A stretch of 63,875 nucleotides of DNA, the filler included, from Octopus bimaculoides (lineage: Eukaryota), in the NCBI RefSeq assembly GCF_001194135.2. It is 7 parts of 6 records of this genome, joined end to end, with 100 filler letters (N's around TTAATTAATTAA, not from the genome) between each part and the next. Parts side by side here need not be neighbours in the genome. Positions count along the whole stretch, not along the records: positions 60,921 to 62,773 come from NW_026295956.1; 6 more parts are not named here. One strand, written 5' to 3'. The first letter of the stretch is position 1. Every line of letters starts with the position of its first letter. Shown in pieces: positions 60,921 through 62,773 of the stretch. The position numbers and the translations under genes are program-made. The notes under the pieces were generated by a model, which ran no database searches, had not been told where the DNA came from, and saw only the letters and a list, made by a program, of their open reading frames with translations.

Positions 60921-62159
60921 GAAGCTTTCTCGATTCACCATAAACAACCCTTCAACATACAATTCCTTCCTTCCCCTCCAGGTGATTCCAACAAACCTTG
61001 GTCCTTTACAGTTCATACTGGAGAAATCTACTCTATCTTTATAAATTCTTTCATTTAAAAATATTCTCTTGTATTCCCCATCCAGGGTCAAACACAAAAT
61101 GTTTTGATATTCAGATGAACATAAATATTTCTTCCACCCACCATGAATGTACAAAAAACTGTCATCAATTGTCATTGTGTCATCACCAAGAAGATACTGC
61201 ATGTAGTGTCTGACTGAATGTAAATATTGACCATCACTGTTGAAGAAAATGATGAATCTTTCGTTTAAGACAATGATGACATCTTCAGCAGTAACTTTAA
61301 TATCCTTGATGTCATCATAATAATATTTTCCATCTCCTTTTCTTATTATTAATGGTTCAGGTATGTCTATTTGTTTTATTTCCTTCACACTCGAATGTAT
61401 CTCATCCATATCAACAAAAAATAAATGACTGTCATCTCCCAATTTACTAAAAACCATTTGATTGTTTGATAAAGAAGTCACACATTGATATTCATTTCTC
61501 GTTTGGTAAATTACCAACGACAATGGAAATTCCACTTTTAATGTCAGCAGTTGGTATTTATTATCATCATAACAATCCAAATTCGTAATGACCAATGTGT
61601 TTGACTGCCATCGACACATTTTAATTTTGTTATAAACATTCCATTTGATAGAATCCAAAAGATGACCATCCAATGTGAATATCTTAATGTTATCATTCCC
61701 CTCGTCCCATCCTGCAATCAGATTATTTTCAGTTATAACCAAATGTTTAATCTTCACTGGTCCCTTGTCTCCCAAATGTTTAGGGACAGGAATACGTCTG
61801 CCTTTATCAGAAACTGTCAGATCCTGTAGATATAAAGAACAAGACAAGATTTCACTGACAGAAATGTGTCTGGAAAATACATCTACCAGGTCGATATAAT
61901 AATTAAGTTGATTATTTGTAACGAGATCATTAACCAACAAATTATGATCGTTTATAGCAAACATACGGCTGTTCTCTATAAGATATACAAACATTTGGTC
62001 AATAGATCCACCGTAGAGATTGAGGGGACGTTTCACTTGGGACATTAAAACACTGGGGACCATCTTAATTCTACGAGGTTGATGACTGACATGACCACCA
62101 CTACTAATGTGCTTGAAGAAAGCTTCTGGCTGGGACTCTAAACCACTGGACACCATCTC

Positions 62160-62190
<31 letters not shown>

Positions 62191-62773
62191 TCTCTGCCAC
62201 TACGCTGACGACATGCACTGCCATGACCACCACCACTCTTTAGCTTGTAGAAAGCTTCTATTTTAGACGTTAAAAGATTGAGTGTCCTCATAAGAATACT
62301 ATCATTAATAATAATACTACCATCACTGCCACTACTCTGACGACGTGCCTTGCCATGACCACCACCACTATGTAGCTTGAACAAAGCTTCTAATTTAGAT
62401 TCTAAGACACTGAATTCCCTCAAAAAACTACCATCACCTTTACTAATACTACCATCACTACTACTACTACTACCATCACTGCCATGACCACCACCATCTA
62501 TTCTAGTGTTGTACTGAAATGCTTTTCCCCTAGTAACAATTAATAGCTTCTCTGTTTCCTTGTCTATTGATAATGATTTCACAAAAAAAGGGATATTAAT
62601 TGTCTTAATTGTTTCAACTTGATTATGATAATTGATGGCTAAAATATCTAAATGGGATGGTTTATCACAATAACAAACAATTTCACCTTCACCCATCTTA
62701 CACACCCGTACATAAGGCTGCCTTAATGATACACTTCTCACTGTCTTTGATAAGTTTCCAATGACCCTTAATT
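60921..62773 (-). CDS. Partial CDS (large exon): tandem beta-propeller protein, NHL/TRIM-C-terminal-like, with Gly/Ser/His repeat linker
   Basis: Stop-free frame across the entire 1853-bp contig between two gaps. The frame stays open upstream of the track's GTG (LRVIGNLSKT-VRSV...), and the track's stop comes from the artificial TTAATTAATTAA spacer. Blade-like segments include KIKHLVITENNLIAGWDEGNDNIKIFTLDGHLLDSI, DVIIVLNERFIIFFNSDGQYL and QNILCLTLDGEYKRIF, resembling mollusc TRIM/NHL six-bladed propellers. No TE motifs seen. Confidence 0.8.
62089..62500 (-). repeat. Coding tandem repeat, ~132-bp (44-aa) period
   Basis: The CATGACCACCA motif recurs at 62089, 62221, 62353 and 62482 (spacings 132, 132, 129 bp, all multiples of 3). 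The protein units read GGGHG...SDGS...EAxxKxx, and embedded (CTA)n encodes Ser runs. Confidence 0.85.

Follow-up and report, generated by a model that had tools for sequence, protein, structure and literature searches.

The window analysed here is a stretch of 63,875 nucleotides, filler included, from the Octopus bimaculoides assembly GCF_001194135.2, made of 7 parts joined end to end, and the part of interest is the piece at positions 60,921 to 62,773, which comes from NW_026295956.1. Its minus strand is occupied from 60921 to 62771 by one open reading frame (ORF) of 617 codons with zero stops, open at both ends where the piece edges cut it. The remaining five frames have 33-90 stops each, with longest open runs of 24-77 codons, and 500 mononucleotide shuffles of the piece, which is 35% G+C, give a longest open run of 87 codons on average and 166 at most. 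We consider it very probable that the piece comes from within a nuclear octopod gene, one that belongs to an octopod-specific family and encodes a protein with about six NHL-like propellers. An earlier note on this DNA, made from the sequence alone, had reported at least 617 stop-free codons filling the contig without giving a strand; they lie on the minus strand, and every peptide that it quoted is found in that translation, which contains PYVRVCKMGEGEIVC, SHLDILAI, VETIKTINIP, VKSLSID, EYQCVTSLSNNQMVF, SHLFFVDM, VKEIKQIDIP, and IKDIKVT. Plus-strand ORFs of 40-74 amino acids in the piece were dismissed, their length being within the chance expectation from the shuffles, and an Rfam scan of 60921-62773 finds no RNA family.

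The window protein has relatives in the databases, none of them identical to it, which makes the copy an unannotated paralogue unless it stems from another octopod. A phmmer search scores E = 6 × 10−235 against the family member P0013 and E = 1.6 × 10−130 against the O. bimaculoides member P0015, and database members share 53-80% identity with it in the propeller part and as much as 93% in the N-terminal stub; the closest sequenced relative differs at 10-15% of nucleotides. Full-length members have 1,625-1,925 amino acids, and the window ORF is colinear with their middle third, about residues 650-1140. Database entries of the family are XP_014776406.1 / A0A0L8H0V4 and XP_014783180.1 from O. 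bimaculoides, CAI9743080.1 from O. vulgaris, XP_036370041.1 from O. sinensis, and GAB1597371.1 from Argonauta hians. They have the same blade order and loop site as the window copy, whose loop is the longest, and all are annotated merely as "uncharacterized" or "hypothetical", so the earlier description of the protein as uncharacterised still applies. Many of the family's gene models in the databases are fragments.

A full HMMER scan with all 617 residues against 1.84 billion cluster representatives returns 19 matches, all from Octopoda, 2 of which are from Argonauta hians. All matches of a word-indexed search with the C-terminal 377 residues are uncharacterised and come from Octopus vulgaris, O. 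sinensis, or O. bimaculoides, and a profile search finds at least 73 clusters at 90% identity, all Octopus. Searching with the most divergent member, P0021, with the aim of reaching squids and other molluscs, finds only P0021 itself and one Logan contig. By these comparisons the family is restricted to Octopoda in the databases searched, and the claim of a lineage-specific gene holds. By our own count, 37 of the 73 clusters are on a single O. vulgaris chromosome record, OX597841.1 (29.19 Mb), and others are on small chromosomes of O. sinensis (15.1-Mb record) and O. bimaculoides (18.6-Mb record). The deep lineages P0018 and P0021 form 1:1:1 clusters across the 3 Octopus species and are found on large chromosomes.

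The fold was approached with AlphaFold2 models, as the earlier note had advised, one of the window protein from a 21-sequence alignment and one of the homologue P0014 (1,164 amino acids) from 54 sequences, the latter with a mean predicted local distance difference test (pLDDT) score of 71.8. Blade and domain membership was read from strand patterns and confidence rather than from contacts in the model coordinates. The window model is all-beta in residues 1-90 and 240-617, mostly at pLDDT 70-94, while residues 92-234 are disordered except for 2 low-confidence helices. The P0014 model begins with an N-terminal helical hairpin followed by 4 blocks of about 23-24 strands at 77-300, 312-557, 591 to about 860, and 862 to 1127 or beyond. 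Both have the pattern of about 23-24 strands per unit of about 270 amino acids, arranged in four-strand blades, and so a propeller fold is predicted. At the domain level, Foldseek against the Protein Data Bank (PDB) finds the six-bladed NHL propellers of TRIM2, Brat, Thin, TRIM3, Mei-P26, and NHL-2, with template modeling (TM) scores of 0.62-0.68 normalised to the target over about 305 columns at 10-12% identity. Whole-chain matches of the window model are generic, to tandem WD40 proteins at TM 0.2-0.3, and those of P0014 are best to the propeller arrays of LRP2/megalin, DDB1, LRP4, and Sevenless, with E from 10−24 to 10−18 and TM of 0.05-0.22.

Sequence profiles lead to the same propeller type. 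A single-sequence search of PDB sequences with the window protein has no match; the family profile has NHL domains for all of its top 11 matches, led by TRIM71 (E = 5.7 × 10−4) and also including Brat, TRIM3, and TRIM2. The match to TRIM71 runs through stretches with the NHL motif, such as LIAGWDEGNDNIKIFTLDGHLL of the window protein. Pfam on the window protein and 5 full-length members gives sub-threshold matches only (DUF4934, SGL, Mala_s_1-like, NHL, and ELP1 propeller), and as to a WD40 signature there is no Pfam match except a chance-level 12.8 bits to WD40_CFAP43. The NHL-type arrangement, 6 blades of 4 antiparallel strands, is found on an AlphaFold2 model of moderate confidence (blade pLDDT 70-94). 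The units are probably divergent NHL-like six-bladed propellers, a distant homology that falls short of formal family membership, and to that extent the domain matches and the profile search bear out the NHL-type propeller that had been proposed.

The next point of interest is how the units are arranged along the chain. The earlier note had aligned by eye the N-terminal segment ahead of the repeat with the propeller after it. When the N-terminal stub is compared by BLASTP with the remaining window protein, no significant self-match appears (E = 0.74), and hhalign with the 92-residue stub alone is marginal at E = 0.027, exactly in the proposed register, which pairs PYVRVCK...SHLDILAI...INIP in the unit before the repeat with EYQCV...SHLFFVDM...IDIP in the unit after it. 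With upstream blades supplied by paralogues, hhalign extends to 126 aligned columns with a probability of 89% and E = 2.1 × 10−6, and with the register unchanged, which confirms the alignment by eye. Profile-profile comparison in 120-residue family windows gives a repeat period of about 245-281 amino acids. Within P0015, residues 710-786 match 991-1067 and 1482-1557, 941-1017 match 1218-1293, and 460-540 match 725-800, with probabilities of 84-96% (94% for 941-1017 to 1218-1293). This period implies about six homologous propeller units per protein, 4 of them modelled and 2 inferred; the earlier claim of at least two homologous propellers was right as to tandem homology, and the count for a full protein is about six.

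Where the tandem repeat sits in this array is seen best in P0014, in which the loop site has only about 10 residues. There, unit 3 extends from 591 to about 861 (271 amino acids), equal to unit 4 in length, with 16 of its strands ahead of the site and the others behind. It is simplest to take the repeat for a surface loop, expanded within propeller 3 (P3), and not for a domain boundary, and the piece most likely holds part of P3, the loop, the rest of P3, all of propeller 4 (P4), and the first residues of the connector to propeller 5 (P5), as laid out in Table 1. Residues 1-88 contain what was called the N-terminal segment, and in P0014 these strands extend the blade run from residue 591. Residues 237-340 are assigned to P3 because of the strand counts, the unit period of about 270 amino acids, and the short loop in paralogues; they have 4 or 5 predicted strands, then a conserved and poorly modelled IDLVDVFSRHISVSEILSCSLYLQDLTVSD, then the P4 connector, and include near-invariant family columns. 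P4 carries the NHL-like motif cited above, the family MCRWQSN blade, and the former "middle of the C-terminal propeller". The idea that the first propeller was cut short by a repeat linker does not hold, as the loop is 9 amino acids in deep lineages and the stub is truncated only by the piece edge. The supposed C-terminal propeller of about 380 amino acids is most likely the last part of P3 together with the whole six-bladed P4.

Table 1. Features of the piece, with residue numbers of the 617-residue window protein in brackets
Feature	Position in window	Strand	Basis
Partial ORF, 617 codons, both ends cut	60921..62771	-	No stop and homologue alignment; about residues 754-1234 of the 1,712-residue P0015 (middle third)
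End of blade 2, blade 3, and most of blade 4 of P3 (residues 1-88)	62508..62771	-	9 AlphaFold2 strands, pLDDT 71-82
Hypervariable loop (residues 89-236)	62064..62507	-	Tandem repeats (Tandem Repeats Finder); pLDDT <50 save helices 115-135 and 157-179
Remainder of P3 and connector to P4 (residues 237-340)	61752..62063	-	AlphaFold2 strands 240-282 at pLDDT 55-78, then low confidence
P4, about six four-stranded blades (residues 341-612)	60936..61751	-	About 23 AlphaFold2 strands, pLDDT 70-94; Foldseek NHL (TRIM2, Brat, Thin, Mei-P26)
Start of P4-P5 connector (residues 613-617, VNRESF)	60921..60935	-	Homologues go on with ...FPVARLQTDECPVQVKDFDVSEEGKTVVCEKANNGNVKIF...

The loop itself derives from a 132-bp tandem repeat at 62085-62501, detected by Tandem Repeats Finder and a repeat search, with 3.2 copies and 74% matches. 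The repeat units remain in frame, and in each 44-amino-acid unit the sequence GGGHG is combined with a stretch rich in Ser and Gly and with a helix predicted to be amphipathic (...LESKLEALFKL, ...TSKIEAFYKL, and ...QPEAFFKH). Inside the 132-bp repeat are (TAC)9-11 microsatellites, at 62162-62188 [(TAC)9] and 62441-62473, which encode in-frame poly-Ser and are a likely source of further variation in loop length. Across 53 family sequences, the loop site has a median length of 21 amino acids, with 9 in the deep lineages P0018, P0021, P0028, P0031, and P0060; a few members have one or two of the 44-amino-acid units and loops of 57-107 amino acids, and the window copy, with 153, has the longest of the 53. 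A separate repeat feature is within P4, where 61239-61285 is a 24-bp imperfect tandem duplication (1.9 copies, 86% matches) encoding the similar strands DVIIVLNERFIIFFN, probably mere similarity between blade strands.

As a gene, the family is nearly or entirely without introns. P0015 has exactly 1,712 codons plus a stop in one uninterrupted ORF of 5,139 nt, so the description of the gene as intron-poor is borne out, and that of a protein encoded by one giant exon stands for the family, the window copy itself providing 617 uninterrupted codons with its ends outside the piece. In O. vulgaris, the giant ORF is split by frame changes, into 8457-8864, 8858-11545, and 11550-14009 at the locus L001 and into 10001-11404 and 11388-15410 at L003; in one case the change consists of a single inserted nucleotide in GACAAAGGAACC. 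The frame changes may be real pseudogene lesions or may be assembly errors or indels. The annotation accommodates them (8858/8864 and 11545/11550 in L001, 11388/11404 in L003) by means of introns or separate genes. How the copies have spread is indicated by their surroundings: paralogous loci share non-coding flanks, and a second, inverted family copy lies 6 kb from P0013. Since the copies carry along non-coding flanks, the pattern points to segmental or tandem duplication in preference to retroposition, which the earlier note had offered as a possibility. Between L001 and L003, an upstream non-coding block (L001 7057-7928) is 93-96% identical, the coding region (L001 8858-14122) is only 86-91% identical, and L001 9958-11095 is 96% identical to a second, inverted copy in L003, a pattern that suggests accelerated coding divergence, patchy (mosaic) gene conversion, or both.

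The ratio of nonsynonymous to synonymous substitution (dN/dS), another measurement the earlier note had called for, is 0.71-1.29 at dS 0.11-0.16 between the window copy and its 2 closest O. vulgaris loci, and 0.45 at dS 0.67 against P0015. Against the closest loci, the first 92 residues have a ratio of 0.34, and the part after the loop has 0.87-1.29. Values of 0.7-1.3 against the nearest paralogues are what would be found if the window copy were a young non-functional duplicate, a pseudogene or drifting copy that is open only through recency, and the frameshifts in at least 2 O. vulgaris copies, the many fragmentary database models, and a loop that is the most expanded in the family, as relaxed constraint might give, would all agree with that. 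We hold it to be unlikely, by a clear margin the least unlikely of the 4 alternatives considered here. The low ratio in the N-terminal 92 residues and the repeat units kept in frame speak for constraint, and the nearest sequenced relative is already 10-15% different in nucleotides. When about 100 random substitutions are simulated in the window ORF, it stays stop-free in 0.075% of trials, a chance of 0.00075, which argues for some selection against nonsense. Such selection is likely unless a much closer unsampled parent copy exists, and a closer paralogue of this kind could weaken both the distance and the simulation as arguments. A different account places the ORF, as cargo or as one of its genes, in a large mobile element or an endogenous virus, and so would explain why a giant ORF without introns exists in many copies within repeat-rich DNA; besides the many copies and the single exon, it can point to flanking non-coding blocks and short dispersed repeats shared by paralogous loci, and to one gene model fused to the transposase-associated domain DUF4371. 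However, where gene models are fused to ZNF, DUF4371, or Pkinase_C domains, neighbouring genes seem to have been merged, and the 5 full-length members have no Pfam domain of a transposase, reverse transcriptase, integrase, capsid, or polymerase. The viral fold library BFVD yields generic propeller matches only, and the copies are clustered on one small chromosome with counterparts in 3 species instead of being dispersed, P0018 and P0021 having their 1:1:1 clusters and the family extending to Argonauta. A mobile origin is thus very improbable; the ORF is a fragment of a real host gene, as had been claimed, and is neither a transposable element nor a contaminant.

The N-termini of the family proteins bear on 2 further alternatives. 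Ahead of the roughly six consecutive propellers is a charged, helical region of about 110-180 amino acids, and in the full-length members these N-termini are hydrophilic and rich in Lys, Arg, and Glu. A Kyte-Doolittle hydropathy scan of the full-length members finds no 19-residue segment with a value above 2.2; by this crude test they show neither a signal peptide nor a membrane segment, so that judging by sequence the proteins are probably soluble and intracellular. Such N-termini are hard to reconcile with a secreted or membrane protein of the multi-propeller kind, a receptor or lectin comparable to the tachylectins or to the YWTD arrays of LRP/megalin, which we would be most surprised to find here. 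Its attraction is that the best whole-chain matches of the P0014 model are the arrays of LRP2/megalin, LRP4, and Sevenless/ROS1; but their TM of at most 0.22 reflects common blade arrays rather than common architecture, the domain-level matches favour NHL, and there are no EGF, LDL-A, or other Pfam matches, the search for the YWTD (LDL-receptor class B) signature likewise finding no Ldl_recept_b or EGF match in the window protein or the 5 full-length members. A classical TRIM-NHL E3 ligase, with RING, B-box, coiled coil, and NHL, whose N-terminal exons would lie outside the piece, would fit the NHL-like fold and motifs of the propellers. The sublineage of P0034 and P0094 (O. sinensis LOC118761994) is even modelled with ankyrin exons and a C3HC4 RING exon (zf-C3HC4_3, 37.8 bits, cut-off 27) joined by splicing to the propeller exon. 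That RING is of the MIB/IAP type beside ankyrin, with no TRIM module, and the join crosses a modelled intron of 44 kb, as in the O. vulgaris locus L005 (CATOCA020000001.1), where exons 6001-6180, 7812-7988, and 10726-10884 are followed by the propeller exon from 54697 onward; either the chimera is genuine or the gene model has been mis-joined. The full-length single-exon members, in contrast, start at their own ATG with the helical, charged region, have about six propellers in place of one, and have no RING or B-box Pfam match in the 5 examined, nor is there one in P0058, P0038, P0065, or P0072. A TRIM ligase is accordingly very improbable, and the link to TRIM proteins drawn in the earlier note finds its only echo in the one sublineage with ankyrin and RING exons 44 kb upstream.

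Returning to the reading we prefer, a fragment of an octopod-specific host gene for a chain of about six NHL-like propellers, several points weigh against it. The dN/dS near 1 and the frameshifts in at least 2 O. vulgaris copies also fit decaying duplicates, and the window copy, seen over 617 codons only, may be broken beyond the piece. As to the fold, the Pfam NHL threshold (PF01436) is not reached: the window protein has no match, and P0021, the best member, reaches 18.5 bits where 20 are required. As to the anatomy, hhalign of the post-loop residues 236-330 against P4 finds nothing (E = 0.24), and part of residues 237-340 is poorly modelled though highly conserved. The literature searched holds no mention of the octopod multi-propeller proteins, and 6 family accessions are absent from 2 octopus proteome supplements; no evidence of transcription or translation was found, nor any report of a response to infection.

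What the protein might do can be proposed by analogy. It would be a multivalent scaffold inside the cell, each of whose NHL-like propellers might present a face that binds RNA or protein, in the manner of Brat, LIN-41/TRIM71, and TRIM2/3, and the targets recognised could be fast-changing ones such as viral or transposon products, which would place the family in innate defence or genome conflict. This last suggestion is made because of the local amplification, the dN/dS near 1 between young paralogues with an open frame, and the length-hypervariable loop. We put the scaffold function, with fast-changing targets in defence or conflict, forward as a tentative possibility. It is more doubtful still that the family is an unrecognised intracellular octopus repertoire of pattern-recognition or restriction factors, in which the propeller faces would be variable modules that recognise RNA or protein of viruses or transposons, with length variation perhaps added by the tandem-repeat loop. 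If true, that repertoire would be a cephalopod counterpart to the TRIM expansions of vertebrates and the NLR expansions of invertebrates.

The nearest known systems are the TRIM-NHL propellers of Brat, TRIM71/LIN-41, TRIM2, TRIM3, Mei-P26, NHL-2, and Thin. Like these, the octopod propellers are six-bladed, with 4 strands per blade, about 270 amino acids, and NHL-type motifs, and both groups are intracellular, the octopod family by prediction. The family differs in having about 10% identity to them, below the Pfam NHL threshold, and chains of about six propellers where those have one; RING, B-box, and filamin modules are missing from nearly all of its members, and its genes are single-exon and found only in octopods. 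Several propellers on one polypeptide are also found in DDB1 and in the arrays of LRP2, LRP4, and Sevenless, and DDB1 is likewise an intracellular adaptor made only of propellers. Yet DDB1 has 3 interleaved seven-bladed WD40-like propellers and is universally conserved and single-copy, whereas LRP-type arrays are extracellular and disulphide-rich with EGF modules between propellers; neither has sequence similarity to the octopod family, and the TM scores are only those given above for whole chains. Lineage-specific expansions of TRIM-, NHL-, and propeller-type genes occur in molluscs and other invertebrates and are often discussed as immune repertoires. The octopod family is like them in being a large, fast-evolving, locally clustered, taxon-restricted repertoire of intracellular propellers, and unlike them in lacking a tripartite motif, in having six propellers, and in being confined to Octopoda in the databases searched.

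Cephalopod genomes are noted for a few large lineage-specific expansions, of which the protocadherins and the C2H2 zinc fingers stand out. The present family would be a further one: its giant genes, free of introns and known only from octopods, number in the dozens, are concentrated on one small chromosome, and code for chains of NHL-like propellers. The fold is already known; the six-propeller architecture and the taxon-restricted, chromosome-concentrated expansion appear to be undescribed in the literature searched. A single chain that carries six NHL-type propellers but neither a catalytic nor a RING module is an unusual architecture, and if the family is expressed, it becomes a candidate player in immunity or RNA regulation specific to octopods. 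Should there be no expression, it would illustrate how a taxon-restricted gene can be amplified on a large scale and decay.

Two observations from neighbouring material are added here. The Logan contig matched by P0021 (L004, from SRR11869391, 7,179 nt) has at 374-5437 an intact ORF of 1,687 amino acids that is 85% identical to P0021, presumably from another octopod; if that run is RNA-seq, the ORF would count as evidence of expression for this deep lineage. The literature searched makes no mention of the run. In the surroundings of the family, C2H2 zinc-finger genes adjoin family members at both L001 and the locus L002.

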